63,162 nt of DNA, filler included, from Octopus bimaculoides (GCF_001194135.2; 5 parts of 5 records of this genome joined end to end with filler, not necessarily neighbours in it), one strand, 5' to 3'. Numbered from the whole stretch's first letter, positions 3,001-24,098 are shown. Notes: generated by a model from the sequence alone, not told the origin. Made by a program: numbers and translations.

Positions 3001-6000
3001 AAACGAACGAACGCACGTAAGTACTTTTGTACGAACGAATGAACGAAAGAAACAACGAACGTATGTACATACGTACGTACGAATGACCGAAAGAACGAAA
3101 GTACGTACGATGAACGAACGAACGAAAGTACGAACGTACGCACGTACTTTCGAAAGAACGAACGAAATAACGAACGTACGTACATTAGTACGTATGTACG
3201 AATGAACGAACGAATCACAGAACGTACGCACGTATGTACGTACGTAAGTATGTACGTACAAACGAACGAACTAACGTACGAACGAACGAAAGATCGAACG
3301 AGCGTATATACGTACGAACGATCAAAAGAACGAACGTACGTATGAACGAACGAAAGAACGAACGTACGTATGTACGTACGAATGAACGATCGAACGAACG
3401 TACGAACGACAAAAAAGAACGATCGAATGAACGAACAAAAGAACGAAAGAACAAACGAACGAACTTACGTACAAACGAACGTCCGTACGTACGAACGAAC
3501 GATTCAACGAAAGAACGTACTACATACGAACGGGCGTAGGAACGAATGAACGTACGCACGAACGAATGATCGAACGAACAAACGTACTTACGTGCGAACG
3601 ATCGTACGAACGAACTCCCGAATGAACTTACGTACGTACATATGTACGTACGAACGAACGAAATATCGTACGTACGAACGGACAACTGAACGAACGAATG
3701 AACGTACGCACGAGCGATCAAACGAAAGAACTAGCGATCGAACATACGTACGTACGAACGACCGAACGGACGGACGGACGAAAGAACGAACGTACGTACG
3801 TACGAACGAAAGAACAAACGTACGTACGAATACACAAAAATCCAACAAACGATCGAACGAACGTACGTACACACATACGTACGTACAAAGGAACGAATGT
3901 ATATACGCACGTACGTAAGTACGTATGTACGAACGAATGAACGAACAAAAGAACGAACGTATGTACATACGTACGTACGAATAACCGAACGAACGATCNN
4001 NNNNNNNNNNNNNNNNNNNNNNNNNNNNNNNNNNNNNNNNNNNNNNNNNNNNNNNNNNNNNNNNNNNNNNNNNNNNNNNNNNNNNNNNNNNNNNNNNNNN
4101 NNNNNNNNNNNNNNNNNNNNNNNNNNNNNNNNNNNNNNNNNNNNNNNNNNNNNNNNNNNNNNNNNNNNNNNNNNNNNNNNNNNNNNNNNNNNNNNGTACG
4201 TAAGTACGTACGTAAGTATGTACGTAAGTACGTACGTAAGTATGTACGTAAGTACGAACGAACTAACGTACGAACGAACGATCGAACGAAGGTATGTACG
4301 TACGAACGAACGAAAGAACGAACAAAAGAACGAACGTACTTACGAACGGACGAACGAATGAACGTACGCACGAGCGAATGATCGAACGTACAAACATACG
4401 TTCGTACGAACGAACGAACGAACGAACTTTCGTACGTACGAACGATCGAATGAACGAACAAAAGAACGAACGTACGTACGAACGAACGAATGAACGAAAG
4501 AACAAACGAACGTACTCACGAACGAACGTACGTACGAACGAACGAACGTACGTACGAACGAACGAACGTACTTACGTCCGTACTTATGAACGAACGGACG
4601 AATGAACGTACGCACGAGCGAATTATCGAACGTACAAACATACGTTCGTTCGAACGAACGATCTTTCGCACGAACGTACGATCGAACGAACGTACGAACG
4701 AAAAAAGGAACGATCGAATGAAAGAATAAGAGAACGAACGAACGTACGAACGAACGAACAAACGAACGAACTTACGTACAAACGAACGTCCGTACGTACG
4801 AACGAACGAATGATTGAACGAAAGAACGTACGTACATATGAACGAACGTTGGAATGAACGAACGTTGGAATGAACGAACGAATGAACTTACGTACGTACA
4901 TATGTACGAACGAACGAAATATCGTACGTACGTAATTATCGAAAAAACGAACGAACGAACGAGCGATCAAACGAAAGAACGAGCGATCGAACAAGCGAAC
5001 GTAGGAAAGTACGTTCGTACGAATGAAATGACAAACGTACGTACGTAAGCACGAAAGAACGATCGAACGAACGAATGTAGGAACGTACGTACGTACCTAC
5101 GAAAGTACGAACGAACGTACGTACGAATACACAAACGATCGAACGAACGCACGTACGTACAAACGAACGAATGTATATACGTACGTACGTAAGTGCGTAT
5201 GTACGAACGAAAGAACGAACGTATGTACATACGTACGTATGTACATACGTACGTATGAATGACCGAACGAACCACCGAACGTACGTTCGTACGTACGATA
5301 AACGAACGAACGAAAGAACGAACGTATGTACGTACGTACTTACGAACGAACGAAGGAAATAACGAACGTACGTACATAAGTACGTATGTACGAACGAACG
5401 AACGAACGTACGCAGGTATGTACGTACGTAAGTATGTACGTACGAACGAACGATCGAACGAGTGTATGTACGTACGAACGAACTAATGAATGAACTTATG
5501 TACGTACGTATGTACGTACGAACAAACGAAATATCGTACGTACGTAATTACGTATGTACGATCGAATAAACGAACGAAAGAACGAGCGATCAAACGAAAG
5601 GACGAGCGATCGAACGAACGAACGTAGGAAAGTACGTTTGTACGAATGAAATACCGAACGAACGTACGTACATATGTACGTACGAACGACCGAACAAACG
5701 GACGGACTAAAGAACGAACGTAATTACGAACGAAAGAACAAACGTACGTACGTAAGCACGAACGAACGATCGAATGAACGAACGTACGCACGTAAGTAAG
5801 TACACAGGTACGTACGTACAAACAAACGAACGTATATATATAAGTACGTATGTACGAACGAACGAACGAACGAACGAACTAACGAATGAACTTACGTACG
5901 TACATATGTACGTACGAACGATCGAAATACATATGTATGTACGAATGAACGAAGGTCTGTAATTGCGTATGTACGATCGAATGAACGAACGAACGAGCGA

Positions 6001-6108
6001 TCGAACGAAAGAATGAACGTACGTACGTACAAACGAACGAACGAATATACGTACGTACATAAGTACGTATGTACGATCGAATGAACGAACGAAAGAACGA
6101 ACGTATGT
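1..6108. repeat. Complex tetranucleotide-based satellite (AACG/TACG/ATCG/AATG units) with higher-order blocks, interrupted by two N gaps
   Basis: Continuous shuffled 4-mers. A ~500-bp block at 121-628 recurs near-identically at 5581-6108. Landmarks such as gaaatatcgta and ggacgtaggaa recur at ~0.6-0.8 kb spacing. Confidence 0.95.
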
Positions 6109-6208
6109 NNNNNNNNNNNNNNNNNNNNNNNNNNNNNNNNNNNNNNNNNNNNNNNNNNNNNNNNNNNNNNNNNNNNNNNNNNNNNNNNNNNNNNNNNNNN
6201 NNNNNNNN

Positions 6209-6965
6209 GCGGTCGTGCTGGAGCACCACCATGACTTTCCCTCCTTATGCTGTGTTCTCTGCACGTTCCTTGCATGGCTCTTCTCCGCCATCTGATGTAG
6301 TCCAATCAAGACTTTCGATGGCACATCTGGTGTATAAGAGAATTTGACATCGCTGCTCTCAGCCGTGTCTCATTTCGAACCATCGGTTCGTCTGGTATCG
6401 TGGATAGGAAAGTGTCGAGTTTTGTTCTAAAGACCTCTACATCCATGTCTAACAGGTCTCTTAATTGTTTTGGCAGGACATTAAAGAGCTGAGGTCCTCT
6501 GAAACCGAGGCTGTTGCAATACCTTGTTCTTATGTGAGAAGCAGTGGACGGTACCCTTGGTACTATGCAGTGGCGACCTGTGCGGGCATTCGTGTGGTAT
6601 TGGATGCCAAAATTTGGTACCAGTCTTTCTAGTATTTTCCATATGTAAATTATTACATATCTTTCCCGACTGCGCTCCAGGGAGTAGAGACTTAGTTCCT
6701 TGAGTCGCTCCCTGTAGTTCATCTGTTGGACTGTGGCGATCTTTTTTGTATAGTGCCGCTGAATTGCCTCGAGTTCTGCTGTCCGCTTGACACTGTGTGG
6801 TGACCACAACTGAGAGCAATTGTCTAGGCAGCTCAGAACAAATGTCTTCCATAGAGTTAACATGACTTTTTGATCCCTTGTTCTGAATGTCCTCAGTATC
6901 CACCCTGCCACTTGTCTGCACTTTGCTGTCAACTTGACAACGTGCATGTGAAATGATGCATCACT
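6209..6965 (-). mobile_element. 5'-truncated CR1/L2-group LINE: C-terminal part of ORF2 (post-RT region) plus start of 3' UTR
   Basis: ORF 6306-6971 reads GWILRTF..WSPH..ELEAIQRHYTKKI..NYRERLKELSLYSLERSRERY..IWKIL, typical of the CR1/L2/Crack ORF2 C-terminus. Confidence 0.9.
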
Positions 6966-6996
6966 GCACATGCTGATGCCCAGGTCTCTCGGATCT

Positions 6997-7111: not shown

Positions 7112-7149
7112 GAAGCGGATCGAATTGGAAGGCAACCCAGACACTAGAG
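7112..7149 (+). CDS. Internal coding exon (phase 2->1), peptide xKRIELEGNPDTR-G, of the M12B-like gene
   Basis: Acceptor ttgttttgtag| and donor GAG|gtagga. Phase joins exon 8315 to give ..DTRGITYMSGVC, in the position of the reprolysin T-G-x-A-Y-x-G-x-x-C motif. Confidence 0.7.
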
Positions 7150-7435
7150 GTAGGATACCTTGGCTGGATTTATTTTGTAGTTGCTGTTGTTGTTGTTGTT
7201 GTTGCTGATAATGTTATTTATATTGTTATTGTTTTTGTTAACATTGCATTCCACAGCTTTCTATAGTTCCACAAAACCATTCCAACACCAAATAATTCCA
7301 CATTGATAATTCCCTCAAATTGTTCCACAAGGCGTCAAGATGGCAAGAGCATTGGTGCGTCGATCAAAAGTAGTTTTATATTGATTCCGCACCAACAGTT
7401 CCTCATCATTCATTCCTCGTTATTACTTTCACATT

Positions 7436-7655
7436 AAGGCGGCGATCTGGTAGAATCGTTAGCACGCTGGACGAAATGCTTAGCGGTATTTCGCCAGTCG
7501 CTCCGTCCTGAGTTCAAATTCCGCCGAGGTCGACTGTGCTGTTCACCTTTTGGGATCGATAAAATAGGTACCAGTTGAACACTGGGTCAATGAAATCGAC
7601 TCATTTCCTCCCCCCAAAATTGTTGTCCTTGTGGCAAAATTTGAAACCATTGTTA
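7436..7655 (+). mobile_element. tRNA-derived SINE family A (tail type 1)
   Basis: Head aaggcggcgatctggtagaatcgttagc, B-box gagttcaaattcc; matches 10+ other copies in the window. Confidence 0.9.
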
Positions 7656-7693
7656 ATTTCACACAAGTAGAGCCATTTGTCTCTGTAATACTT

Positions 7694-7942
7694 GTGAAGG
7701 TGGCGACCGAGTTGTTAGGGTGTTGCGTTCAGAATCTTAAGATCGTGGTTTCAATTCCCGGCTCGGGCGGTGTGTCGTGTTCTTGAACAGAACACTTTCT
7801 TTCACGTTGCTCCAGTAAAATGAGTGACCCTACTATGGACTGGTATCCAGTTCAGGGGAAATCTTCTGACCTCGGTCATTTATATGCTACAGAAATCGGG
7901 AAACCTCGGACTCGGGACAGTAATGACCATGGGTTGATGATA
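7694..7942 (+). mobile_element. tRNA-derived SINE family E (diverged)
   Basis: A/B-box head followed by gtgttcttgaacagaacactttctttcacgttgctccagt, shared with copies at 11615, 21340, 45150 and 45772. Confidence 0.8.
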
Positions 7943-7966
7943 ACGTACCTAATATATCAATATGAC

Positions 7967-8250
7967 CAGTGGTTCTCAACCGAGGTCCAAATAAGCCTTG
8001 TGTATGTGTGTGGGGGGATCCATATAAAATTTTGTTGCTAAAATTTATTTTAGGACACATAATTCTTTAACCCGTTCATATCTCCAATAAACTGGTTTTA
8101 CTTATACAGCAAACAAAATATTTTAACAATTTTTTTATACAATTCCTAATTATGTTTAATTGTAAATATGTAATATATCTTAACCATCGAATGGCTATGA
8201 GGGCCCATCCCAGTGGAATAAGAATTTTAAAAAATGGTTGAGAACCGCTG
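7967..8250. mobile_element. Non-autonomous hAT (Charlie-like) MITE, 284 bp
   Basis: 15-bp TIRs cagtggttctcaacc / ggttgagaaccgctg (1 mismatch). Right flank atctagac fits the NTCTAGAN hAT-Charlie target; left flank is degraded. Confidence 0.85.
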
Positions 8251-8314
8251 ATCTAGACTGTAATACACTACCTTATCGAGTGCTAATGTTTTCTCATTTT
8301 TCCACCCGGTTTAG

Positions 8315-8423
8315 GTATAACGTACATGAGTGGTGTATGCAGTGGTAAATATTCAGCATCTGTTGTGAACAGTGGATCTGAAAACCTTGGTATTATCACC
8401 TCAACTCGCCTCCTGGGGCACAG
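8315..8423 (+). CDS. Coding exon (phase 1->2) of a reprolysin/M12B (ADAM/ADAMTS-like) domain: G-ITYMSGVCSGKYSASVVNSGSENLGIITSTRLLGH-S
   Basis: Pyrimidine-rich acceptor ttttctcatttttccacccggtttag| and donor CACAG|gtaatc; 109 nt open. GxxYxxGVC...SxSVV and LGHS match reprolysin motifs leading into the zinc helix. Confidence 0.85.
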
Positions 8424-8752
8424 GTAATCCTTTAATCCGTTCTTTTTTATACGTTGTAATAATCTATAATTTATTCTACCACACCAGACACACCCAGCGT
8501 AAATCTTTTTTTTTTTATGAGAAACAGTTAGTCAAGATATTCGACTGTATATCGAGTATTATAACGGAAGGATTTTTGTGTCTATGAACACTTAAACATC
8601 TGAATATTATCATATTATTTCAACAAGTTTGGCCACATCTGTCAACAGACTAACCGCATTTATATGTGCCAGAAACGATTCTTTAGATTCTTCGTAATTT
8701 TCGAGCCAACTAAAGATATCTTAAGTTTCATCTTGTGTTGTATCTTTTGCAG

Positions 8753-8872
8753 CTTAAGTGCAGGTTACGTGGATATACCCGGTTGTACAACGAAGGATGA
8801 TGGATTTACAGGAGAAACATTTGGTCTGTGTTCTATAAACTCCATAAAAAACAAAATCGAGAAACTATCGAG
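8753..8872 (+). CDS. Coding exon (phase 2->2) of the M12B-like gene: LSAGYVDIPGCTTKDDGFTGETFGLCSINSIKNKIEKLS
   Basis: Acceptor tatcttttgcag| and donor TCGAG|gtaaga; 120 nt open. FGLCSINSI matches the reprolysin FSxCSxxxI C-terminal helix; in phase with exon 8315. Confidence 0.8.
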
Positions 8873-8977
8873 GTAAGAAACATTATACAATACACAATCT
8901 CCGTGGTCATTGTTATTTTCTAATCGATTTTCTTTCATTGATTTATTGAACAATTTCAAGTTTCATTACGTCCCAGT

Positions 8978-9144
8978 CAGTCATGACTTCAATTAGTCAT
9001 GACTTCAATCAGTCATGACTTCAATCAGTCAGGACTTCAATCAGTCATGACTTCAATCAGTCAGGACTTCAATCAATCATGACTTCAATCAGTCATGACT
9101 TCAATCAGTCATGACTTCAATCAGTCTTGACTTCAATCAGTCAG
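8978..9144. repeat. 16-bp minisatellite (cagtcatgacttcaat) x ~10
   Basis: Direct reading of units at a 16-bp period; most contain the palindrome AGTCATGACT. Confidence 0.95.
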
Positions 9145-9439
9145 TGTTTTTCTTCATTCCCAATTGTGAATATTTCAATTTATTTACGTCTTTAACGAAC
9201 TTCAGAAAAGAGCAATAAACGTCATATTTTAATTAACTTTTCTTGTACTTTACTATTATAACATCAAATAGTGTGAATCTTCTCTCCATCCATCCATCCA
9301 TCCATCCATCCATCCATTCATCCATCCATCCATTCATCCATATACCTTATTATGACAAACAGATATATGTATATGTATGTATGTGTGTGTGTGTGTATTA
9401 GAGTTATGACATTTCCATAACCTAATAACCCTATACTGT

Positions 9440-11610
9440 AATTCGATAAATAATTTTATAAAAGTCAGGAAACTAAGATTTGTTTTGCTTTATTTGAAAA
9501 CAATATCACCCCCAACTTAAGAAATTGATCACCACTTTTGACCCAAATCATGCAAAATTCTAGTGGAGTTCATAACGCCTGCTCAGGCTTTTGCCAAACT
9601 TGGTGTGCTGACTCAATGCAGTGCATAAATGGTATATCTGAAATTGCAGCTTTCTAGTTGAAGTAGTTTCGGAGTTATGGACTTTTAAAGCTATAATCAC
9701 TAGATTCATACTTCAGTATTGTCGCTGCCTAAATCCTTGTAAACACAACAGAGATGCAGAATAAAAGTACATTTTTAAGACTACTGAATTGAAATTGTTC
9801 TATGCAAAGGTTCAAAACTAAGCTATTTTAAGACAGAGGCCACTACAAGCATTCGATAACATACAAAATTTAAAATAATACATATTTTTAACTTTATAAG
9901 TTTAATTCCAATTTTAAATAACTGTATAAAAAAAGGGTGCTGAATGTTAGCAAATTTTAAACATAAAAATTAATGTTTTGTTAGATAAAATAAATCGAAG
10001 CTAAAATTTCTCCTTATTTTTACAAACATCATAAAGATCTTGAAGGCACTTGATTACCCGTTCTGTACTCTGATTTGTTCTGGGAATTTCAGGTTTTGAT
10101 GGTTCTCGACTCCAAAGTTTTTTACAGAGTTCAATGCTTTTTTTATGAACTTGCAGACTACCACATAACTTCTGATAAACATGTGCATTGAACATTTGGT
10201 CAGTAAACGAAAAATCTGCCCAGCTGTAAGAGATGAATTGACAAACATTGAGAAGCAACACTCTTTTCTTTGGTAGAAGAATAAATGCCAAAGAGCTAGT
10301 ATTGCTCGAGAATTCCTTCTTGCATTACTTAAGTTGGGTATTTTTTGAAACTTTACAGTAGGAAATTTGCCGGTTTCTTCAAAGAAACGAAAAACTCTGG
10401 TCAAATGAAATAGAAATTTTATGTCATTTTGCCATCCTGCTAATTCAGTAATCTTTTCTTCACCATTGTTGAAATAATCTGGAGTTTCTCGTAATTACTT
10501 AGAAGCTCTGGGGTGAATGTATCATCAATATTGGGAAATGGCTTTTTCTCTCGAAGTTCGTTATCCATTACAACACAAAGAACTCTGTCAAGGATATGAT
10601 GCTGACAACCAACAAATTGCGGTTCTTTCAAACCCTTTTGAGCAAACCGTCTTTGCAACTGAATGACAGTGACATTTCTTTTCCCAGTGTTCACACTCGT
10701 TGTCTCAGCGACAATCATCTTTACACTGTTCCATAAATTGTATTAATCTAAAACAGTTGTTGTTCTTTTCACAATAGTACCAGCTTTTCCGTTTGGTAAT
10801 TGTGCTTCTAACTTAACTTCTCTGTTCATTCCTTAAAACTAGCACTTGGTGTTCTTGGTCATCAATACATTTACCATCAAATTGCAATGACCAGTTTTCT
10901 AAACGTAGTGTTTTCTGCATTTTCTTTTTTTAGTCTAACAGCTTCTTTGATAGTCGATCTGTAAATACCAGATCCCTGTATCAGAGTTGACTCCGATAAA
11001 GGGATTAACTTGACAAGGAGTAACATAGCGATACGGATCTATTACCAGAAACAGGATTGATAACATTACGACACTCACCCAAAACCTCAGACTTCCTCTT
11101 TCTCCACGACTCACGAACTTATCTCAATTTACGACATTTATTAAAAGTATTTTGTTTGTTGCCTTTTTCTGTCGACACAGATTGGTTTTTCACGGAATCT
11201 CTTCCTTATTCTTACCCCCCCCCCCCATTCACTGTTATGGTTATGGTACTGATGTGTTATCTGTGATTGAGATAATTGTTTAATAAGACGGCCTAAATTC
11301 TTCAAAATCTAAAACGATTATGATACAAAATCCTTGTTTACGTCAAACTTCAAATCGAAGAGATCTAAAGTCCAGATATTGATTTATCCAAGGTCAAAAC
11401 GTACGAGATATACATGAAAAGTTAGCACAAGCTCATATATTTTAAAATATTCATACGTAAATATAACTTTGAGGCCTAAGATACCAACAATATTATGGTT
11501 AGGTCCAAGTACTTTGCATAACGCTACAAAGCTATTAAAAATGTCTGTACTATTTCCAGTGCTAGGTGTCATAGAACCAGTTAGCGGTTTCCGAGACGTA
11601 TAAGTAACCA
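9440..11610 (-). mobile_element. Degraded cut-and-paste DNA transposon with DDE/CxxH transposase relic (divergent hAT-like lineage; boundaries approximate)
   Basis: Minus-strand fragments across frameshifts at ~10001-11000: WSLQFDGK..., IVAETTSVNTG (D2 position), GCQHH (CxxH), LSNARxNSRAILAL, PRTNQSTERVIK (E position). TIRs not resolved. Confidence 0.7.
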
Positions 11611-11614
11611 AAAT

Positions 11615-11850
11615 GACGACACTCCCCCGCTCCCCTGAACAAGACTCTAGTTCGTTGCTGAGTTACTGACTTACTACTGAGTGGACAGGAACAGCGTGAA
11701 AAGAAGTATCTTGCTCAAGAACTTAACGCGCCATCCGGTCCAGGAATCAAAAGCACGATCTTGGAATCGTGAGTGTTACACTTGGAATCGTGAGTGTAAC
11801 ACTTGGAATCGTGAGTGTAACACTCTAAACATTAGGCAACCGCGCCTTTA
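11615..11850 (-). mobile_element. SINE family E copy with internal 21-bp triplication
   Basis: cttgctcaagaacttaacgcg..ccggtccaggaatc; cttggaatcgtgagtgt(t/a)aca x3 at 11760-11822. Confidence 0.8.
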
Positions 11851-12824
11851 CTCAAGGCTCATGACACGACGCTTATTATAAGAATATCAATCAGCATGAT
11901 TGACATACATGCGTGAAACTGAAAGAAGCCCGTCGTATATANNNNNNNNNNNNNNNNNNNNNNNNNNNNNNNNNNNNNNNNNNNNNNNNNNNNNNNNNNN
12001 NNNNNNNNNNNNNNNNNNNNNNNNNNNNNNNNNNNNNNNNNNNNNNNNNNNNNNNNNNNNNNNNNNNNNNNNNNNNNNNNNNNNNNNNNNNNNNNNNNNN
12101 NNNNNNNNNNNNNNNNNNNNNNNNNNNNNNNNNNNNNNNNNNNNNNNNNNNNNNNNNNNNNNNNNNNNNNNNNNNNNNNNNNNNNNNNNNNNNNNNNNNN
12201 NNNNNNNNNNNNNNNNNNNNNNNNNNNNNNNNNNNNNNNNNNNNNNNNNNNNNNNNNNNNNNNNNNNNNNNNNNNNNNNNNNNNNNNNNNNNNNNNNNNN
12301 NNNNNNNNNNNNNNNNNNNNNNNNNNNNNNNNNNNNNNNNNNNNNNNNNNNNNNNNNNNNNNNNNNNNNNNNNNNNNNNNNNNNNNNNNNNNNNNNNNNN
12401 NNNNNNNNNNNNNNNNNNNNNNNNNNNNNNNNNNNNNNNNNNNNNNNNNNNNNNNNNNNNNNNNNNNNNNNNNNNNNNNNNNNNNNNNNNNNNNNNNNNN
12501 NNNNNNNNNNNNNNNNNNNNNNNNNNNNNNNNNNNNNNNNNNNNNNNNNNNNNNNNNNNNNNNNNNNNNNNNNNNNNNNNNNNNNNNNNNNNNNNNNNNN
12601 NNNNNNNNNNNNNNNNNNNNNNNNNNNNNNNNNNNNNNNNNNNNNNNNNNNNNNNNNNNNNNNNNNNNNNNNNNNNNNNNNNNNNNNNNNNNNNNNNNNN
12701 NNNNNNNNNNNNNNNNNNNNNNNNNNNNNNNNNNNNNNNNNNNNNNNNNNNNNNNNNNNNNNNNNNNNNNNNNNNNNNNNNNNNNNNNNNNNNNNNNNNN
12801 NNNNNNNNNNNNNNNNNNNNNNNN

Positions 12825-13440
12825 AGTGCTGACTTAAACCGCTCAAGTTGTTCGCAGTAGATCTCCTTTGTTATCGTTTGGTTTGGGTTTAAAAGTTCAA
12901 AGTGGACTAAACCTTCCATATCCCACCAAAAAAATAACAACATATTTCGTGGGTAAAAACCTTATTTAGCCTGGGATGTCGCTGTTTCTCTTTTCCCTAC
13001 CCACTGTCTTTGGCGCAAGCCATTTTTATAGAGAACCCGTTTCTCGTCACCAGTCAGTATTCGGTCCCAAAAAGGTTCAGTAAAGAAAAACATACATTCA
13101 CTGTCTGCGCGCGAATAGACTCGGAAAGTTTTTGAGGAACCCATTGACCCAGTTTGCTGACTTTTCCGATGGCACGTAGGTGTCGATGAATGGTTGAATG
13201 TCCAAATCCATGCTTCTCTGCTAGTTCCTCAACAGTTACGATGGATTTTTGTCCCACCAGCATTTGAAGGACATCCTCGTCGAGCTCTACAGATCTTCCA
13301 GGACGAGGCTCGTCTTCTAGGCTGTAGTTTCCGGTTCGGAATCTCTGGAAACACCGCTGACACTGGCTTACGCTTATTGTCCGATCCCCATATACTGCAT
13401 TAATATTCCTTGCAATTTCCGTTGCGTTGTTGCCATCCCA
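12825..13440 (-). mobile_element. mariner transposase pseudogene, lineage 1 (N-terminal HTH to catalytic core; runs into gap)
   Basis: Fragments EELAEKHGFGHSTIHRHLRAIGKVSKLGQWVP, DRILTGDEKRVLY, FWWDMEGLVHFELLNPNQTITKEIYCEQL. Confidence 0.92.
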
Positions 13441-13445
13441 ATAAT

Positions 13446-13494
<49 letters not shown>

Positions 13495-13989
13495 AGATAT
13501 AATCTATAAGAGATATAATCTCAGGACGAATTCCACAGTTAATTTGGCTTTACGAGGTGTGTCTACTTTGAGTATGATACATAGATTGCTATTTTAACCT
13601 AATACTGCTTCTGTTGCGCATAACGAACTTGTTGCACTTTGCGAACTTTTTTTCATCCTGAAATCAATTTGAAGCCAATGTCTGTAGCAATTGGTGACCG
13701 TTTGATGTGATAAATCTGACCTTCAAACTCTTTTTCTGTTTTTAAAATTCTGTGTTAATTAACCCCTGTGTCAAAGAGACACTGTCAAAATGTCAGCTTT
13801 AATTGAAAAAAAACTTGCAGTCAATTTGTTTAAAAGAACAACTTTTACCTTTTAACTGAAGTAATAACAATGAAAGTTCTACCTTCTATTAATTCCATCC
13901 TCTGCCAGAAGCGCTCCACTCCCTCTCTTACCACCCCCTCTCTCTCTCATTCTTTTTGTTGGTGTTTATATATTTTAATGAATTTCGAC

Positions 13990-14105
13990 ATTCTTTCACA
14001 GAATAACAACAAGAATAACAGCAACAACGATAATAATAATAATAATAATAGGAAGAGGAGGAGGAGGAGAAAAAGAAGAAAAAGAAGAAGAAGAAGAAGA
14101 AGAAG

Positions 14106-14137
<32 letters not shown>

Positions 14138-14190
14138 GAAGAAGAAGATGATGATGATGATGATGATGATGATGAAAAAGAAGAAGAAGA
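13990..14190. repeat. Compound trinucleotide microsatellite (AAC/AAT/GAG/GAA/GAT)
   Basis: Direct reading. Confidence 0.95.
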
Positions 14191-14289
14191 TTGTGCTAAT
14201 TATTGTTGAGCTTTGGGGGACAGTATCAGAATGCACAGAGGACATGGGAGTGGAGTGCCCAGTAGTAAAACGTTTTGTCTCCTTGGCAC

Positions 14290-14720
14290 GGCCTGAGGTA
14301 TACCTGTTGTAGAATATGGTTCCAATATCATCAAGTGGAACCTAGATGACTTATAAAGAATGGATACAAAAACCAGAAAACTCCCAATTGCCAAGAAAAT
14401 GCACCAGCCAAAGACAGTTACAGACCGCATCAACTCGCCAAGGAGAGAAGGTGGAAGACGGCTGATCCAACTAGGACTCCCATATAAAATATCCACAATT
14501 GGTCAGCTGAAGTAGTTAAGCAAGACTAATTAATTATTGGATGGTGATATTAGGGAGAGAACATGAATCCGCGAAGATGCTCCAGTTTGTAAGCAAAGAT
14601 GGGAAATATAAGATCAGGAGTTACGCAACGCAGAAATAGAAAACAGTGACGAAGCTGATCTAAGCCAAAATGCTTAGGATGAAAGCAAAAAGCAGGTCTT
14701 AATAGCTTGGAAGACATGTC
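14290..14720 (+). mobile_element. Degraded R4/Dong-like (RLE-class) non-LTR retrotransposon fragment, post-RT region
   Basis: From 14300: IPVVEYGSNIIKWNLDDL*RMDTKTRKL..KMHQPK..DRINSPRREGGRRL, resembling the PVLxYxxxxIxW..LDxKTRK..HxPK..RLYLPRxxGGRGL block; in-frame stops. Confidence 0.7.
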
Positions 14721-14883
14721 CATTTCAATAATTAGATGTTAATGAGGAAGGCTGAGGATCTCTCATTCTAAATCCCCAAATTTGCACATTTTAAATCTAT
14801 TATTTTATTGCTGAAATTTTTCTGTTTTATCAAATCGTGTGTTTGTAGATTTGTTTGTTAACTGATTATTTCTGTTGTGTTTA

Positions 14884-15100
14884 TGGTAGCAGGTTAGCAA
14901 AATCATTAACATATCGAACAAAATACTTAGCGACATTTCTTCCGGCTATTTGCATTCTGAGTTCAAATTCCGCCGAGAGTGACTTTGCTTTTCATCTGAG
15001 GTCGAGACATAAAGCACCAGTGATGTACTGGAGTCGATGTTATTTACTAGCGTCTTCACCCTCTAAAATTGCTGGCCTGGTGCCAAAATTAGAAATGATT
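14884..15100 (+). mobile_element. SINE family A, old diverged copy (tail type 1)
   Basis: ctgagttcaaattccgccgag..gactttgcttttcat..ctaaaattgctggcctggtgccaaaattagaaa. Confidence 0.8.
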
Positions 15101-15163
15101 ATGTTGTGTTTAATCATCATACGGCACATATTTTTAATAATTTTTCTGTAAGACCGAATACTT

Positions 15164-15299
15164 CGTTATTAGCCTCGAGAGAACCTCTCATATAGGTGTT
15201 TTGGTGCATAAAAGCAAACATCGTTCGTAGCAGACGATCAATGTAAGTGCTTTTACGCACCAAGCGTCTGTATGAGAGACTCTTTCAAGGCTAATAACG
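15164..15299. repeat. 136-bp imperfect palindrome (~52-bp arms, 31-nt loop), likely a foldback/MITE-like repeat
   Basis: cgttattagcctcgagagaacctctcata..taaaagca pairs with tgcttttacgc..tatgagagactctttcaaggctaataacg; mismatches are mostly transitions. Confidence 0.8.
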
Positions 15300-15872
15300 C
15301 AGAATTCAGTATTTTTACAAGCCGTCCATGTTGAGCTGGATATAAAGATTACCTTTTGGTGTTAATACTGCTTCCGTTGTTAATAATTAATTTTCTGGGA
15401 GAGTTATCTCATCTTATCTGGACTATTTTATTTGCTTCGTTGCGTGAACTATTCACACTATATACGTTACTTAACCTTTCGATCAGCCATTTTGTATTGA
15501 AGATTTCTATCTTTTGTAATGATACATTGTGTTGTAAATTCCCAAGTGTAGAGAAAATTGTTGAACTTGGATTTATCGCGAGGTATTAAAATGTTATGAT
15601 TTGATATTTTCTTTCGTATATTGCATGCAGCATTCCTTTATCTACGGTCGTCTTTAACCGGAGGGTTTTCATAAAATTTACTTTAGCTTGCTTTATGTTG
15701 GCTCATAAACTGTTGTTATTTGTATCGTCAACTTCCGGTTCAGTCACAATAAAATGTCGTCGAATTTTAGTAACACCGGAGGTAAGATTTATTGCCACAC
15801 ATTTGCTTACACTGCAGGTTATGAGACGTCCAATACTAGCGTTAACAACAACATTATTATTATTATTGATTC

Positions 15873-15915
<43 letters not shown>

Positions 15916-16636
15916 NNNNNNNNNNGTTGTTATTATTGTTATTATTAGTAAACAGATCAATAACATTAATGTAATTGCCGCTATCAATACTATCGCCATC
16001 ATTATTAACTCCATCCCTGCTATATGTTCTCCTGTTTAGAGTAATACTAAATGAAGTACAACACTTCACAGCTTTGCGTGTTTTTACTGTCTGGAAGATT
16101 GAATATTTGTTATTTCGAGCCGGTTATTCTTTGTTCTGTGCAACTCTATCTGGAAGAAGCAGTCACCGCATTGAACACCGCTATGATTTGCAAACATAAA
16201 TAACAGCTTTGGAGTAGCATAGAACACTGAATAATGTTACACAGTTNNNNNNNNNNNNNNNNNNNNNNNNNNNNNNNNNNNNNNNNNNNNNNNNNNNNNN
16301 NNNNNNNNNNNNNNNNNNNNNNNNNNNNNNNNNNNNNNNNNNNNNNNNNNNNNNNNNNNNNNNNNNNNNNNNNNNNNNNNNNNNNNNNNNNNNNNNNNNN
16401 NNNNNNNNNNNNNNNNNNNNNNNNNNNNNNNNNNNNNNNNNNNNNNNNNNNNNNNNNNNNNNNNNNNNNNNNNNNNNNNNNNNNNNNNNNNNNNNNNNNN
16501 NNNNNNNNNNNNNNNNNNNNNNNNNNNNNNNNNNNNNNGGGGATTTTTACATATCTTCATGTCGGAGCAATTGTAAACTTGTAAGAATGTCCGGCAACAG
16601 GCGAGTTTCTTTTTTCTTAAGTTTATTATCATTTTA

Positions 16637-16674
<38 letters not shown>

Positions 16675-16720
16675 ACGTGCTGTTTGTTACCGTTCCATTA
16701 TCACATCTGATACATTGTAG

Positions 16721-16750
16721 CGAACCTCCCCAAACCGATACGTGCTACAG
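16721..16750 (+). CDS. Candidate 30-nt exon (phase 2->2), S-EPPQTDTCY-S, of the M12B-like gene
   Basis: Acceptor tacattgtag| and consensus donor CAG|gtgagt; phase-compatible with exons 8753 and 18712. Confidence 0.55.
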
Positions 16751-16829
16751 GTGAGTACCCATTGTTGTCTCTTCAGATGCACAATGGAAAATACACGCTG
16801 CACTTGCCTCTCTCTCTCTCTCTCTCTCT

Positions 16830-16877
<48 letters not shown>

Positions 16878-17649
16878 GTCTCTCCCTCGCTCTCTCTCCA
16901 CCTCTCTCTCTCTCAGTCCAAAATCAGAAACTCATAAAGAAATTAGAAATCTCTACCGTCAAGTCACCGTGTCTATTTCTATCCCAACCAAAACACTACA
17001 CTTAACCACATTAATTACTCAAAAATATTGAGAAATGTATGAAAATCACAACAACGTCATTTTGTCATTTCCTATAATGTTATGGTTTCGAATTCGAGCA
17101 GACTCTACTGACCTCTCGCACTCCTCATGATGTGTGACAAACAGGCTTCTGTCTTCCACTGGTTTATCTCATTGCAGAGCGGGTACCTTATGGTTATGTA
17201 TGCATGTAATACGGGTGGTATGGTCAGGTTGACTATGGTAGGGGTGTCGCTGTTGTGAAAGAATAATGTCGTCTGTATTAGTCATAAAAGAAGGGGAATC
17301 CTCATACACGAGTTATTGCCGGTCAAGTACACTTACGGTTAAAGGCGTTCCGCCCTTTTTTGGGGGGTAGTTTTTCAGACGTATCCTTATTTTTACTTCG
17401 TTAGAATGCGATTTGAGTGAGATTTAGTTACCATTTCTGGCAGATCAACGGGAATAAGTTGTGGTTCTTGATGATCTCCCAAGAACTCCACCCCCACACC
17501 TAATGAGACAGGTTTATCACGTGACATCCTCGTCAACTTAGGATGTGAGGGAATCTGGACCAGCTTTTCTTGATTTATGAGTTACTGGTTTTTGTGTTTC
17601 TCGCTTCCTTTTCTCTTCTCTCTCTCCCTCTTTTCTCTCTCCCTCTTCT

Positions 17650-17696
<47 letters not shown>

Positions 17697-17711
17697 NNNN
17701 NNNNNNCTTCT

Positions 17712-17751
<40 letters not shown>

Positions 17752-18711
17752 TCTCTCTCTAATTTCCTCAGTACAACTCCCTTTCTATCTTTGTTTCCGT
17801 CGGTCTTTCCTATTTTATTTCTTTCTCTTTTTATCGATCGCCTTCTCTCTCTCTCTCTCTCTCTCTCTCCCACTCATCTTCTCTATCTAACTCACTACCT
17901 CTCTCTTTAACTTCTATCCATAATCATGCTTGACTATCCCCTAATTTCATTTCAACAACCCAGTTATTTTTAACTTGTATTTAATATTCCTGCCTTTCTT
18001 TCTGATTTTCTCTCTCATCCTCTCACTCTTTCTCTCCCTTGTTCTTCTTTCCTTTGCTCTCTCTCTCTCTCTCCCCCCTTTTCTCTCTTTATCATGCTTT
18101 TTGTCTTTCCTTCACTCTCTCTCTCTCTCCCGTCTCTCTCTCCCTCCCGTCTCTCTCTCTCGCTCGCTCTCTCTCCCGTCTCTCTCTTTTATGTTGCTCT
18201 TTGTCTTTACTTTGCTCTCTCTCTCTCTCTCTCTCTCTCCCTCGCTCTTTGTTTAAATCACTACTTCTTTACCTCACCTCCCATCCTTCACGGTGCAGTA
18301 GTTTCTCCTAATGATCACGTCCAGCGTTTCCTACTTCTATAGCTTTATTCTCATTTCCAATTCCTAATTTGACCGTAGTTAGTCCTTTTTACATCTAATT
18401 GTAGTTATATTCTCATAAATTTTCTTAAATCGGGAAGTGGTTCTTCTGTCTTTAGAGCTTCCTTACAGTTTCTTCGTCCTGTTGCTGATCAGATGAAATT
18501 CGGAGCTAACTAACCCCTTCTCGATATAGTTCATTTCCGCCAAACACAGTTTTCTTAGTTCTCTTCATTCTCTTTTATTTTCACAATAGATTTAATTAAT
18601 AAAATTTAGATATGCATGAATTAAAATTTCACATAAAACCTGATCATTAAATGTCCTCTCTCTTTCTCTTTTATATCCACGCATTCTCTTTTTCTTTGAC
18701 TTCATACATAG

Positions 18712-18736
18712 CCTTACTTGTTCTGACCCAGTAGAG
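18712..18736 (+). CDS. Candidate 25-nt microexon (phase 2->0), LTCSDPVE
   Basis: Long pyrimidine tract ..ttctctttttctttgacttcatacatag| and donor GAG|gtaaga. Only the phase-2 frame is open; joined, it gives DTCYSLTCSDP (CxxLxCxxP, as in ADAMTS-type Cys-rich modules). Confidence 0.5.
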
Positions 18737-20307
18737 GTAAGACATTATTATTGTTCACTGAATTTTTTTCCTATCATGTCTGTAGTAGATTTGTGACTAT
18801 TCGGTGGTACAGAAATATTTTTGACTTCTATCTTTAGCGATATAGGTGCTCATGTAGTGCCCTTGTGTATATATGCACATATCTAATAGTGTATGTATAT
18901 AGTTTATTAATTTGCCTGTACGGCTGATAATTCGCTTGCCACTCGTGGCAGTATTTTAATAATACCATCCCTATTTACACATATACATACATAATACATA
19001 CATAATACATACATACAGATATATATATANNNNNNNNNNNNNNNNNNNNNNNNNNNNNNNNNNNNNNNNNNNNNNNNNNNNNNNNNNNNNNNNNNNNNNN
19101 NNNNNNNNNNNNNNNNNNNNNNNNNNNNNNNNNNNNNNNNNNNNNATATATATACACACATACATACATACATACATAAATATGTATATATTATATATAT
19201 ATGTGTGTGTGTATGAGTTTATCATTGAAAAATAGAAAACAAGCAATATAACTGATATTTCAAACATGAATTCCCTGCTGCTGCTTCAATAATCCTTACA
19301 TACCATCATAATCAAGTTATCAGTTATGCAGCATAATTATACAGGAGGTAAGAATTACATACGTTATAGCCACTTCGATGTCGTATGCAACATTCTACAC
19401 TGAAATAGAATTTTCGGAGTTTTTTATGTGATGTTACAGATGGAGTTCTAAATTTTGTCCTTATTCCTAGTGCACATGCACCAAATTGGAAAATCGTACA
19501 AAGGCATGCGCGCGCACACACACATGGAATTATATGAAATGCTATTAAGTGAAAGCAAGTACTCAATACAGGAAAGTGGAACAGTATGCTTTGAAATTCA
19601 AGTCTGCTCGTGAGCCCATTTGACATTAGTCTTTACCGATTCTCAGGCAAGTTCTGAGCTCAATTTGTTCCAAGTCCGGTTTTACCTTTACTAATTAATA
19701 CTTAATCGACTGACTGTAAACCAGAACCTAATGTTCTTGCACTGAAAGAATCCGGTATATGAAATCAGCAAAAGTGTAAAAGACTAAGAACTTACTTCAT
19801 CTTGTGTGTACTCGTCCTCTGTGCCATAGTTCTAATCTTGCCAAAGTAGATGTTGTGTTTGAAACCAAAAGAGTCAGCAATAAGCATCAGTAATATACAA
19901 ACGGGCCTATCCAAAGCAAACACATCTTTGAAATCGATTATCTACGAGTCAAAAGAATTAAATATATTACATATTCTTCTGTTATCGTCCATTCATTCAA
20001 GAAGTAGAACCGGTCATTTTCAATAATAATAGAATTCCTTCATCATCATATACGAACTTTAATTTTTCATCATTTTGAATACTTCATGTACACTCTGTCT
20101 AAATCACTCACTTTTGACCTTTAACAGGTATATCAACTCATCATAATCTTATCGATTTTTCGTGATATTTCACGAATATAATCCGTTTTAATCTTTTATT
20201 TGCGGCAACTTTTCTTTGCATTTATTTTAATCAAGAAAAATTCTTAATCCATATTGGTTGAAATTCACCGACGAATTTTGACTGTTATGAATTACTACAT
20301 ATACTGC

Positions 20308-20338
<31 letters not shown>

Positions 20339-20342
20339 CCGG

Positions 20343-20386
<44 letters not shown>

Positions 20387-20408
20387 CGTGTATGTGCGTA
20401 AGTATGTG

Positions 20409-20441
<33 letters not shown>

Positions 20442-20745
20442 ATGTATACATAAGTGTGAGTGTGTGTGTGTGTATGATTCAGAGTGTTTTGTGTTGTCTT
20501 TGTTTAACAAGCGATTTGTTCTAAGACTTCATCTTGAAACTGAAGCAACTGCAGCATAGAATAAAACAAAACAATAAAATTCGTTTTAAAATTTAGATTT
20601 ATTTCATGATAAATTAAAATTTAAATTCAAGATGAATCGAACTGATTTATGTATTATTAAACGGTTCTCTTATAATGTAGCTGCTACCGTTTTTTTACTT
20701 TCCATTTTCATTTTTCTTTCAAATTTTTTTTCGTAATTTCGTAAG

Positions 20746-20865
20746 AGTTTCTCGAAGTTTGTTCTGGACTGTAAAGATCCCAAATCCATCATTACTATCT
20801 CAAGACCTCCCCGATATTCTCAAGAGAAAGTGATACTGACGTTTGTTGCTGTCCCTTTAATGTAG
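20746..20865 (+). CDS. Possible terminal exon (phase 0): SFSKFVLDCKDPKSIITISRPPRYSQEKVILTFVAVPLM*
   Basis: T-rich acceptor ..ttttttcgtaatttcgtaag|, 39 open codons then TAG; AATAAA at 20891-20896 followed by a U/GU-rich tract. No homology support. Confidence 0.3.
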   Translation, partial: SFSKFVLDCKDPKSIITISRPPRYSQEKVILTFVAVPLM

Positions 20866-21339
20866 CAGGGTTAATGTGGTTGATGTGGGCAATAAACGTG
20901 AGAATTTGTGTTTCTGATTATTAGCTTTACACGTCATCAGTCACGTGCTTATGTTTTGTTTGTAACCATTCCATGTTATCTGTTAATTTATTTTAGCATT
21001 GTACAGTGTTACGAGTATTGTTTCTAGCATTAATCATCCATTTTGTTAGGAATATTGTCCACTCATGTGTTATCTAGTTTCGTTTTGTGCTGTGGGTTGA
21101 AGCTCATTGCAAACGCTGTTTGTTAGAAGTCCATAGGGAGCCGACGGCACAATGTCGCATTTGTATGACCAATACCGCAATTTGAATCGTGACGTTTATA
21201 GATTTCTCCACCAGGAGACAACTTCTCCTAGACAACTCCCTCATCAACACCTGGACATTACTGCCTCGAGTCCTAGGCCTCATAGAACCACTTACCCATG
21301 ACGCATAAATGACAAAGATCACAATATTCCTCCTGAAAG

Positions 21340-21506
21340 GGAGGCCAATCCGTTATAGGTTTACTCATTTACAGCTAAGTGGACTGGAGCAACGTGAAAT
21401 AAAGTGTTTTGCTGAAGAACACAACACACCGCTCGGTCCGGGAATCGAAACTACAAGCTTACGATCTTGAGTGCAACACTATAACGATTAGGCCACGCGC
21501 TTTCAC
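21340..21506 (-). mobile_element. SINE family E head
   Basis: ctaagtggactggagcaacgtgaaataaagtgttttgctgaagaacacaac..ggaatcgaaactac..taggccacgcgctttcac. Confidence 0.8.
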
Positions 21507-22015
21507 AACATCCATACATCCGGAAATCCAAGACTTAATGATTTGATAAACACATCAGAGTAGTTGTCGACTGAATCCCGCATTTCTGAAACGGATGGTT
21601 TCCCTTCGCTGCAGCAGCCCAGTTAGTAACAACAATATCCGTCGTCTGTTAGGCGTTCGATAACCTGATCGTCCTTAACCAATGAGAATTCGCTCAGTCA
21701 GTGCTTCGCTGCTAAGATACCGCTTTGTTCACCATGTTGTCGGGTGCGCGTGTACGAGTGTATGTGAATGAGATTCTGAGTAGCAACAGTGTGGATCATC
21801 AATTGATTCCTTTCACACACATATACCCCCAGACACACACACATACAAACACTCATAAACACGCGCGCCCGCGAATTGTGTATGCGTACATATATACGTA
21901 TATGCATAAATACGTCTCTCACCCACTCACTTTTTCTCTACATACATACATACATACATGCATGTATACACATACATACAGATATACATATATATATATA
22001 TATATATGATATACA

Positions 22016-22185
22016 TGGAGCAGCTGTGTGGTAAGAAGCTTGCTTCCCAACCACATGGTTCCGGATTCAATCCCATTGCGTGGCACCTTGGGCAAGTGTC
22101 TTTTACTATAACCTCAGGCCAACCAAAGCCTTGTGAGTGGATTTGGTAGATGGAAACTGGAAGAAGCCCGTCGTATATATATATA
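22016..22185 (+). mobile_element. SINE family B, 5' half (tRNA head + CCTTGGGCAAGT CORE-like motif), ending in (TA)n
   Basis: gctgtgtggtaagaagcttgcttcccaaccacatgg..ggcaccttgggcaagtgtctt..gaagaagcccgtcgtatat. Confidence 0.9.
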
Positions 22186-23428
22186 ATTTGGTATAGAATA
22201 ATAATTTCAGATACTTGTCTTAAACATTCAGACAAGCAAATTTATAATTCAGATGTGTGGCATGAGATATTATTCCATTCAAATAACCAGATATTTATAT
22301 TAAGGCATAGATGATAAAAATATAGAGTTATAAGAATATAAACATAAAAGATAAAATAAAACATAAAAATATATAAGGAGTACCATGAAAGTAGAAAATA
22401 TAATTAGACTAGATTAAAGGAGGCAACTGAAATTTTTATCTTTATACCAAATTAAAACTGTTGTACTATATACTGGAGCCTTATCTCTATTAAAATGCTA
22501 GTATTCTATATATATATATATATATNNNNNNNNNNNNNNNNNNNNNNNNNNNNNNNNNNNNNNNNNNNNNNNNNNNNNNNNNNNNNNNNNNNNNNNNNNN
22601 NNNNNNNNNNNNNNNNNNNNNNNNNNNNNNNNNNNNNNNNNNNNNNNNNNNNNNNNNNNNNNNNNNNNNNNNNNNNNNNNNNNNNNNNNNNNNNNNNNNN
22701 NNNNNNNNNNNNNNNNNNNNNNNNNNNNNNNNNNNNNNNNNNNNNNNNNNNNNNNNNNNNNNNNNNNNNNNNNNNNNNNNNNNNNNNNNNNNNNNNNNNN
22801 NNNNNNNNNNNNNNNNNNNNNNNNNNNNNNNNNNNNNNNNNNNNNNNNNNNNNNNNNNNNNNNNNNNNNNNNNNNNNNNNNNNNNNNNNNNNNNNNNNNN
22901 NNNNNNNNNNNNNNNNNNNNNNNNNNNNNNNNNNNNNNNNNNNNNNNNNNNNNNNNNNNNNNNNNNNNNNNNNNNNNNNNNNNNNNNNNNNNNNNNNNNN
23001 NNNNNNNNNNNNNNNNNNNNNNNNNNNNNNNNNNNNNNNNNNNNNNNNNNNNNNNNNNNNNNNNNNNNNNNNNNNNNNNNNNNNNNNNNNNNNNNNNNNN
23101 NNNNNNNNNNNNNNNNNNNNNNNNNNNNNNNNNNNNNNNNNNNNNNNNNNNNNNNNNNNNNNNNNNNNNNNNNNNNNNNNNNNNNNNNNNNNNNNNNNNN
23201 NNNNNNNNNNNNNNNNNNNNNNNNNNNNNNNNNNNNNNNNNNNNNNNNNNNNNNNNNNNNNNNNNNNNNNNNNNNNNNNNNNNNNNNNNNNNNNNNNNNN
23301 NNNNNNNNNNNNNNNNNNNNNNNNNNNNNNNNNNNNNNNNNNNNNNNNNNNNNNNNNNNNNNNNNNNNNNNNNNNNNNNNNNNNNNNNNNNNNNNNNNNN
23401 NNNNNNNNNNNNNNNNNNNNNNNNNNNN

Positions 23429-23566
23429 CCGTAAATTAGCGGTTCGGCAAAAGAGACCGATAAAATAAGTACTAGACTTACAAAGAATAAGTCCTGGCGT
23501 CGATTTGTTCGGCTAAAGGCGGTGCTCCAGCATGGCTGCAGTCAAATGGCTGAAAGAAATAAAAGA

Positions 23567-23570
<4 letters not shown>
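23429..23570 (+). mobile_element. SINE family B, 3' half (after gap)
   Basis: gcggttcggcaaaagagaccga..aaggcggtgctccagcatggctgcagtcaaatgg. Confidence 0.9.
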
Positions 23571-23599
<29 letters not shown>

Positions 23600-23666
23600 T
23601 GTGTACGTATGTATGTATGTATGTATGTATGTATATATATATATGTGTATATGTATATACACACAC

Positions 23667-23725
<59 letters not shown>

Positions 23726-24062
23726 TGATATGATATATCAATTGGCTTGAAAGCACACCAAGCTGGCCAATGCCAAAGAAAGCCATACTGGTGTATATGT
23801 CCGTTATATATTCTTCTTTCTCTACCTTTCTGTTCGTATCTGCTCAACGTTGATTTTGTCTGCCATCTGTACCAGAAATATATTGTTATAATATCCCGGT
23901 TATACTCTCACTATATATTTTTACTGTATGAATCTTTGATGGAGTGGAGGATTAGGAAACACAGCTGCCCCACGTTGTATAGTTTAAATACGAATTTAAT
24001 TGAAACACGTGTAAGATGACAAAATAAATAATTTATGAACCGACTTTTCATGTCAGTATTTC

Positions 24063-24098
<36 letters not shown>

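Follow-up and report, generated by a model that had tools for sequence, protein, structure and literature searches.

The window analyzed here is a stretch of 63,162 nucleotides (nt), filler included, from Octopus bimaculoides (GCF_001194135.2; five parts of five records joined end to end with filler and not necessarily neighbours in the genome), and its subject is a spliced gene for a protease-like protein. Three plus-strand coding exons between positions 7112 and 8872 form part of LOC106878760, whose product is the 870-amino-acid (aa) "uncharacterized protein" XP_052823539.1. Comparison of coleoid sequences argues strongly that this product is a conserved non-enzymatic pseudoprotease and not the relic of a decaying pseudogene. 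The original prediction, which extended from 7112 to 20865, had proposed a hidden ADAM/reprolysin-like gene for a selected pseudoprotease. Its central proposal holds up well, but the gene is not hidden, as NCBI already annotates the locus, though as uncharacterised.

The exons and the introns between them are as follows.

7112-7149, plus strand: coding exon 1, 38 nt, ttgttttgtag/GAAGCG ... CTAGAG/gtagga, encoding KRIELEGNPDTR; it comprises the last base of the R335 codon, K336-R347 and the first base of G348 (XP_052823539.1 numbering)
7150-8314, plus strand: intron 1, 1165 nt, gap-free, with a copy of an interspersed repeat at about 7707-7816
8315-8423, plus strand: coding exon 2, 109 nt, ccggtttag/GTATAA ... 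GCACAG/gtaatc, encoding GITYMSGVCSGKYSASVVNSGSENLGIITSTRLLGH; it holds the first half of the degenerate zinc motif
8424-8752, plus strand: intron 2, 329 nt, phase 2, gap-free, cutting the zinc motif between H383 and S384
8753-8872, plus strand: coding exon 3, 120 nt, tcttttgcag/CTTAAG ... ATCGAG/gtaaga, encoding (S)LSAGYVDIPGCTTKDDGFTGETFGLCSINSIKNKIEKLS

Reading of the sequence, together with a script, gives each of the three exons a polypyrimidine tract with an AG acceptor, a GT donor and matching phases. There is no N base in 7112-8872, and the gaps of the assembly therefore spare exons 1-3 and both introns between them. Splicing yields exactly the 88-aa peptide that had been predicted, and tblastn of the full-length protein on the window places this peptide at residues 336-423 of XP_052823539.1 with 100% identity, the three exons together covering residues 335-424. 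The proposed junctions, 7149/8315 and 8423/8753, are those used by the RefSeq model and by mRNA of the cuttlefish Sepia esculenta, which includes the exon 1-2 join and joins the exons exactly at the splice sites predicted in the window.

LOC106878760 spans 108.7 kb in the chromosome assembly GCA_001194135.2. The window includes 24 kb from its interior, which is why so few of its exons are found there. The 5' exons lie outside the window, as had been expected, according to tblastn with the full-length protein. An older annotation split the gene into two models: XP_014788624.1, which corresponds to the N-terminal third (residues 1-335) and then reads into the intron, and XP_014783567.1, which begins at a Met within exon 2. 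The full-length protein was reached by way of the cuttlefish. An exhaustive HMMER search with the 88-aa peptide, covering 1.84 billion representatives, returned a single close relative, an 867-aa protein from Sepia with 84% identity to the peptide (E = 3.6e-42), and a search with this orthologue then led to XP_052823539.1. A homologue search with a 391-aa domain alignment returned only XP_014788624.1 and no Nautilus, squid or other outgroup orthologue, and a literature search on the locus and protein identifiers found no paper.

Homology assigns the protein to peptidase family M12B (reprolysin/adamalysin). The full-length sequence scores 30.3 bits against Pfam Reprolysin (PF01421; cut-off 20.8), the profile comparison that the original prediction had called for, and it also matches ADAMTS_CR_2 (PF17771) at 33.4 bits over a cut-off of 27.3 in residues 448-508. 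With the 88-aa peptide as the query, the Protein Data Bank (PDB) returned snake venom metalloproteinases and ADAMTS13 with E values of about 5e-4 to 1e-2. A profile of residues 209-599 searched against solved structures ranked ADAMTS13 (3e-8) first, followed by ADAMTS1 (1.7e-7), ADAMTS5 (4e-6) and then ADAMTS4; these matches (E = 3e-8 to 1.4e-5) span the protease and disintegrin-like domains, and snake venom metalloproteinases rank after them, with the PDB matches overall running from 3e-8 to 3e-4. Because an ADAMTS_CR_2 domain is present and no transmembrane segment is found, we assign the protein on its predicted architecture to the secreted ADAMTS/MIG-17-type relatives. Thus the reprolysin part of the earlier family label stands, and the implied membrane ADAM does not. 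The predicted domains, in protein coordinates, are as follows.

N-terminus: signal peptide, the only strongly hydrophobic 19-residue window
About 180 aa: N-terminal region, with no furin site ahead of the protease-like domain
About 209-430: reprolysin/ADAMTS-type protease-like domain, its C-terminal core encoded by the three window exons
448-508: ADAMTS disintegrin-like domain (ADAMTS_CR_2, by Pfam)
511-600: two six-cysteine modules with the cysteine spacing C..C..C..CC..C
After the six-cysteine modules: Thr/Pro-rich linker
190 aa: polybasic tail with 50 K+R versus 5 D+E and an isoelectric point of 12

A Pfam scan of the full-length protein detected no TSP_1, ADAM_spacer1 or other ancillary domain at E values up to 0.1, and likewise no disintegrin (PF00200), ADAM Cys-rich or EGF domain. 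The N-terminal region has no Pfam match to a propeptide domain, and the segments 511-600 and 601-870 have none to PLAC or TSP1 at E values up to 10. By eye the six-cysteine modules resemble PLAC in cysteine spacing only, the Pfam PLAC model not matching them, and a PDB search with these modules gave only a chance match.

The catalytic consensus HExxHxxGxxHD of the family reads RLLGHSLSAGYV in the octopus protein, that is R379-L380-L-G-H383-S-L-S386-A-G-Y389-V390. We set the motif positions by alignment to snake venom metalloproteinases, to ADAMTS structures and to KAL8581691.1, a hypothetical protein of the gastropod Nucella lapillus that is the nearest non-cephalopod relative found. In the alignments to both snake venom metalloproteinases and ADAMTS, RLLGH falls on HELGH, and the structure-profile alignment places TRLLGHSLSAGYVD on (T)AHELGHVFNMPHDD. 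The Nucella alignment pairs SAGY-VD with GLKHDKD and GFTGETF with GFMGYSF. Read directly from the window, the codons at the critical positions are as follows.

8407-8409, plus strand: CGC, first histidine replaced by Arg379
8410-8412, plus strand: CTC, general-base glutamate replaced by Leu380
8419-8421, plus strand: CAC, second histidine kept as H383, the sole retained histidine of the motif
8757-8759, plus strand: AGT, glycine replaced by Ser386
8766-8768, plus strand: TAC, third histidine replaced by Tyr389
8769-8771, plus strand: GTG, the aspartate after the third histidine replaced by Val390
8808-8810, plus strand: ACA, Met-turn methionine replaced by Thr403

These codons bear out the proposed loss of the first and third histidines, the glutamate and the glycine, with only the second histidine left. 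The absence of the Met-turn methionine is confirmed as well: no Met occurs between Y389 and C410, and the Met-turn position reads GFT403G in both octopus and Sepia, where Nucella has GFMG. Neither the three histidines and glutamate of active M12B enzymes nor their Met-turn methionine is therefore found in the protein. Because two of the three zinc ligands, the general-base glutamate, the turn glycine, the aspartate and the Met-turn methionine are all missing, canonical metzincin catalysis should be unavailable to it, and judged from its primary structure we regard such catalysis as excluded. Among the putative disulfide cysteines of the domain, C356 (GVC) and C395 (PGC) align to cysteines of the family, and C410 (GLCS) and C429 fit the FSxCS...C pattern; C395 and C410, both retained, are encoded in exon 3, and all four are conserved in Sepia.

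The dead motif is shared among coleoids. It is identical in O. bimaculoides, O. sinensis, Argonauta hians and Sepia esculenta, and all complete sequences carry TRLLGHSLSAGY together with GFTGETFGLCS. The cluster of XP_052823539.1 contains O. sinensis LOC115210557 (two isoforms, 98% identity), two fragments from Argonauta hians (95%) and the O. vulgaris protein CAI9721044.1 (94%), which is named "ADAMTS 19-like". In the alignment the CAI9721044.1 model lacks the GITYMSG...LLGH exon, with about 33 unrelated residues in its place that are possibly a retained intron; it also repeats the following exon and is truncated at the C-terminus. The "ADAMTS19-like" name of this copy should not be read as denoting a protease. 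An intact full-length open reading frame (ORF) is present in O. bimaculoides, O. sinensis and Sepia, and a nearly complete one in Argonauta.

Expression evidence comes from the cuttlefish. Uninterrupted contigs of about 4.1 kb, found in 103 RNA-seq runs, encode the 867-aa Sepia protein over the whole 2604-nt coding sequence. The assignment of these contigs to Sepia rests on two of the runs, SRR19578110 and SRR25097171, which according to the depositing papers are S. esculenta larval RNA-seq (PMC10141105, PMC10571815). The contigs are therefore spliced cuttlefish mRNAs, and the gene is transcribed in Sepia larvae.

We estimated selection from the 88 codons in the window by the Nei-Gojobori method, Octopus versus Sepia, and from conservation of the protein. 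The comparison that the original prediction had proposed, with orthologues in other cephalopods, thus yields a shared loss of the first and third histidines and the glutamate, with 17 non-synonymous differences at 202.7 sites (pN 0.084) against 46 synonymous differences at 61.3 sites (pS 0.75, which is saturated). The resulting pN/pS is about 0.11, a value that overestimates dN/dS (the ratio of non-synonymous to synonymous substitution rates) because pS is saturated. At the protein level octopus and cuttlefish are 80% identical overall, and each of the 25 cysteines that follow the signal peptide is kept in both. By region the identity is 81% in the N-terminal (pro) region, 81% in the protease-like domain, 69% in the disintegrin-like domain, 98.9% in the six-cysteine modules and 74% in the polybasic tail. 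These values indicate that the protein has been under strong purifying selection since the split of octopus and cuttlefish, lineages whose divergence is put by published clocks at a few hundred million years ago. Because the dead motif is common to Octopus, Argonauta and Sepia, the catalytic loss predates this split. Its date is bounded only by the Octopus-Sepia split, since no orthologue from Nautilus, squid or another outgroup was retrieved. Taken together, the marks of a pseudopeptidase are all found in this gene: its ORF is intact, it is under purifying selection, and it is expressed although the catalytic residues are lost.

We consider it likely that the protein is secreted to the extracellular matrix or cell surface and serves there, without catalysis, in binding or as a scaffold. 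In the mechanism that we propose, the disulfide-bonded, rigid protease-like and disintegrin-like body and the nearly invariant cysteine modules would present interaction surfaces, and the polybasic tail would tether the protein to an acidic matrix such as glycosaminoglycans, or to the cell surface. The resulting role would be that of a scaffold, a decoy or a ligand, with parallels in the dead ADAMs (ADAM22/23) and the ADAMTSL proteins. Several points weigh against this interpretation. The loss of activity is one that we infer from sequence, and a matrix-binding role would follow purely from composition and analogy. The N-terminal half of the protease-like domain is weakly matched, Pfam covering profile positions 63-157 of 200, and AlphaFold2 on a three-sequence alignment gave a mean pLDDT (predicted local distance difference test) of 29, unusable for the fold or for the geometry of the former active site. 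The six-cysteine module, the most conserved part of the protein, is without Pfam recognition as PLAC, TSP1 or propeptide. Finally, the expression evidence comes from whole Sepia larvae and not from O. bimaculoides tissues.

A decaying pseudogene or exon relic, left by a former protease gene that drifted after losing its active site, would account for the loss of the catalytic residues all together, and the 88-aa peptide by itself scores just above the Pfam Reprolysin threshold (20.9 versus 20.8 bits). Such drift is hardly credible given that full-length ORFs persist intact in three species and nearly so in Argonauta, that pN is so far below pS with every cysteine kept, and that splice sites are perfect and spliced mRNA occurs in the Sepia runs; the saturated synonymous divergence moreover excludes cross-contamination between Sepia and Octopus. 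The conservation of the dead site could instead be taken to mean that the protein is still a protease with a non-canonical metal site or mechanism, using for example H383, D391 and other ligands. Both H383 and the nearby D391 remain, and since the pseudo-active-site segment is identical across about 250 million years or more the cleft could still be used. We regard this as very unlikely, as the glutamate is Leu, two of the three histidines are Arg and Tyr, the turn glycine is Ser and the Met-turn methionine is Thr, and as comparable substitutions are present in inactive M12 ADAMs, for example QLLSLSMGITYD in ADAM2 (PMC11266112).

The contrast among domains allows a further possibility, in which the protease-like domain is a structural spacer and the protein functions through its polybasic tail and its pair of six-cysteine modules, for instance as a matrix-bound signalling factor or a secreted ligand. 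The cysteine modules are indeed far better conserved between octopus and cuttlefish than the protease-like and disintegrin-like domains, and some pseudopeptidase domains seem superfluous (PMC11266112). However, the pN value was obtained on the protease-like domain, which is thus strongly constrained too, and no function can be attached to the cysteine modules because they match nothing in Pfam or the PDB; we therefore hold a pure spacer to be possible but somewhat doubtful. A salivary or venom component, acting as a decoy or spreading factor of the posterior salivary gland, would agree with the sequence features of a secreted protein. The salivary glands of coleoids are reported to contain ADAMTS-like 'GON-domain' metalloproteases. 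Rapid evolution is usual among venom proteins, yet here 80% identity is kept between orders, and many experiments show expression in whole hatchlings and larvae of the cuttlefish, which together leave a venom role little likelihood. A secreted binding or scaffold protein remains the reading that we prefer.

Downstream of exon 3 the original prediction proved too generous: the only coding sequence found there is a cassette micro-exon, with nothing coding found from it to 20865. This part of the gene comprises the following.

8873-16720, plus strand: intron between exon 3 and the micro-exon, with gaps at 11942-12824, 15916-15925 and 16247-16538, a 16-bp tandem array and mariner-like remnants
16721-16750, plus strand: cassette micro-exon, 30 nt, frame-preserving, tgtag/CGAACCTCCCCAAACCGATACGTGCTACAG/gtgagt
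16751-24098, plus strand: start of the next intron, the exon for SSNNNCLGGG... being absent from the sequenced bases

We located the micro-exon by a six-frame search for an insert of O. sinensis, and its splice sites were checked by script. Its peptide, SEPPQTDTCY, directly follows the residues of exon 3, precedes those of the next exon and brings in one further cysteine. The insert is carried by O. sinensis isoform X1 (XP_036358234.1) and by the old O. bimaculoides model XP_014783567.1; XP_052823539.1, O. sinensis X2, Argonauta and Sepia lack it. Without the micro-exon the mature protein has 25 cysteines, an odd number, of which Cys113 stands alone in the N-terminal region; the micro-exon supplies a 26th. 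Speculatively, its inclusion could alter disulfide pairing or permit dimerisation.

No residues are missing between exon 3 and the micro-exon in the annotated isoforms, and the three gaps of this intron therefore hide no annotated exon. Beyond the micro-exon, tblastn with full-length XP_052823539.1 at E values up to 50 revealed no further exon up to 24098, and the next constitutive exon (SSNNNCLGGG...) thus sits in one of the gaps 17697-17706, 19030-19145 and 22526-23428, or beyond 24098. A weak tblastn match at 15230-15289 (ADDQCKCFYAP..., E about 1) was rejected as this exon and attributed to chance, because its sequence differs from that of the protein and because it comes before the micro-exon, whereas the exon sought follows the micro-exon in the mRNA. 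An exon at 20865 was likewise rejected, as translation beyond the AG at that point does not give SSNNNCLGGG and tblastn finds no match to the protein at that position.

The sequence around and between the exons is rich in repeats and transposon remains, which are listed here for orientation.

14-6103 (gaps 630-1506, 3999-4195 and 6109-6208): about 6 kb of degenerate tetranucleotide satellite with ACGA/ACGT units and a 44-bp higher-order period; it yields long stop-free ORFs in several frames (TYVRS..., NERT...) that are artefacts and not genes
6306-6971, minus strand: 221-aa ORF just upstream of exon 1, by eye the C-terminal end of a retrotransposon ORF, with no Pfam match
7707-7816 and 21383-21492: inverted copies of an interspersed repeat, 110 nt, 80% complementary, probably resembling a short interspersed nuclear element (SINE); ARAGORN calls no tRNA, and thus no tRNA head, in them
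8977-9143: 16-bp tandem repeat TCAGTCATGACTTCAA, about 10 copies with 93% matches, beginning about 100 nt past the exon 3 donor
10004-10718, minus strand: three overlapping or adjacent ORF pieces of 92-146 aa in the long intron, with no Pfam match, possibly a degraded transposon gene
12825-13461, minus strand, beside the gap 11942-12824: mariner/Mos1-type transposase remnants (HTH_48, E = 1.2e-12; Transposase_1, E = 6.7e-13), interrupted by stops and the gap, an intronic transposon relic

Among known systems, the protein resembles ADAMTS13, 1, 5 and 4 in that these are its best solved-structure matches, in its ADAMTS_CR_2 domain, and in being secreted with no transmembrane segment. It differs from them in lacking any Pfam-detected TSP1 repeat, Cys-rich/spacer region or propeptide, in having no furin site, and in the destruction of its zinc motif and Met-turn. 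To our knowledge, all 19 human ADAMTS keep HExxH. The overall layout is close to that of MIG-17 of Caenorhabditis elegans, which consists of a signal peptide, a pro region, a metalloprotease domain, a disintegrin-like domain and a C-terminal six-cysteine PLAC, with no thrombospondin repeat (TSR) and no transmembrane segment; for the PLAC the resemblance extends to the cysteine pattern only. In contrast to the octopus protein with its dead motif, MIG-17 is proteolytically active, and gonad migration depends on that activity. Functional analogues of the role proposed here are the ADAMTSL proteins and papilin, which are related to ADAMTS, are secreted and operate in the extracellular matrix without catalysis; they have TSRs and a spacer but no protease domain. 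Unlike these, the octopus protein keeps a protease-like domain and is without TSRs. In a 2024 review MIG-17 is termed a 'secreted ADAM-like gene' and ADAMTS are mentioned only in passing (PMC11266112).

The same review tabulates UNC-71 and ADAM2, 7, 11, 18, 22, 23, 29 and 32 as inactive M12 proteins, all of them membrane ADAMs and all retaining the Met-turn methionine (PMC11266112). Like the octopus protein, the inactive ADAMs, C. elegans UNC-71 included, have M12B protease-like domains with a substituted HExxHxxGxxHD that are kept under selection, serving as interaction modules as is proposed for octopus; ADAM22/23, for instance, bind LGI1 via the surface of the protease-like domain (PMC11266112). 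In ADAM2, 18 and 32 the third histidine is Tyr, as it is in octopus (PMC11266112). The inactive ADAMs differ in being anchored in the membrane as type-I proteins, in having disintegrin, Cys-rich and EGF domains, and in keeping the Met-turn methionine. The cephalopod protein is predicted to be secreted, its disintegrin-like domain is of the ADAMTS type, its Met-turn methionine is lost, and it carries a cysteine module and polybasic tail of its own.

Nucella KAL8581691.1 shares the DIPGC...GF(M/T)G loop with the octopus protein at an identity of about 23-33%. It nevertheless keeps HELGHNMGLKHD and GFM where octopus has RLLGHSLSAGY-V and GFT, so that its HELGHxMGLxHD site is intact, and it matches all of the Reprolysin_2-5 Pfam models strongly. 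An intact site in this gastropod would fit catalytic loss on the cephalopod lineage.

Inactive protease homologues often prove to be receptors, decoys or matrix organisers, as with ADAM22/23-LGI1 in epilepsy and ADAMTSL in fibrillin disorders. Dead M12B proteases are familiar and the locus is already annotated, and the present result adds detail to what is known and overturns none of it. A more ambitious proposal, which we think rather unlikely but worth stating, is that a coleoid-specific family of secreted pseudoproteases descends from an ADAMTS/MIG-17-type enzyme, having originated before octopus and cuttlefish diverged, and that it lost catalysis wholly, Met-turn included, and was then frozen. 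On this view the cysteine module and tail would constitute a new system, an extracellular ligand or matrix organiser, linked to tissue novelties of the coleoids, and the protein would be the first dead member of the ADAMTS branch. At the level of the protein described here, a secreted ADAMTS-type molecule that appears to have lost its whole catalytic machinery and yet retains 80% identity between octopus and cuttlefish would be a clear example of a protease scaffold turned to binding, and it is a candidate lineage-restricted extracellular factor in cephalopods.

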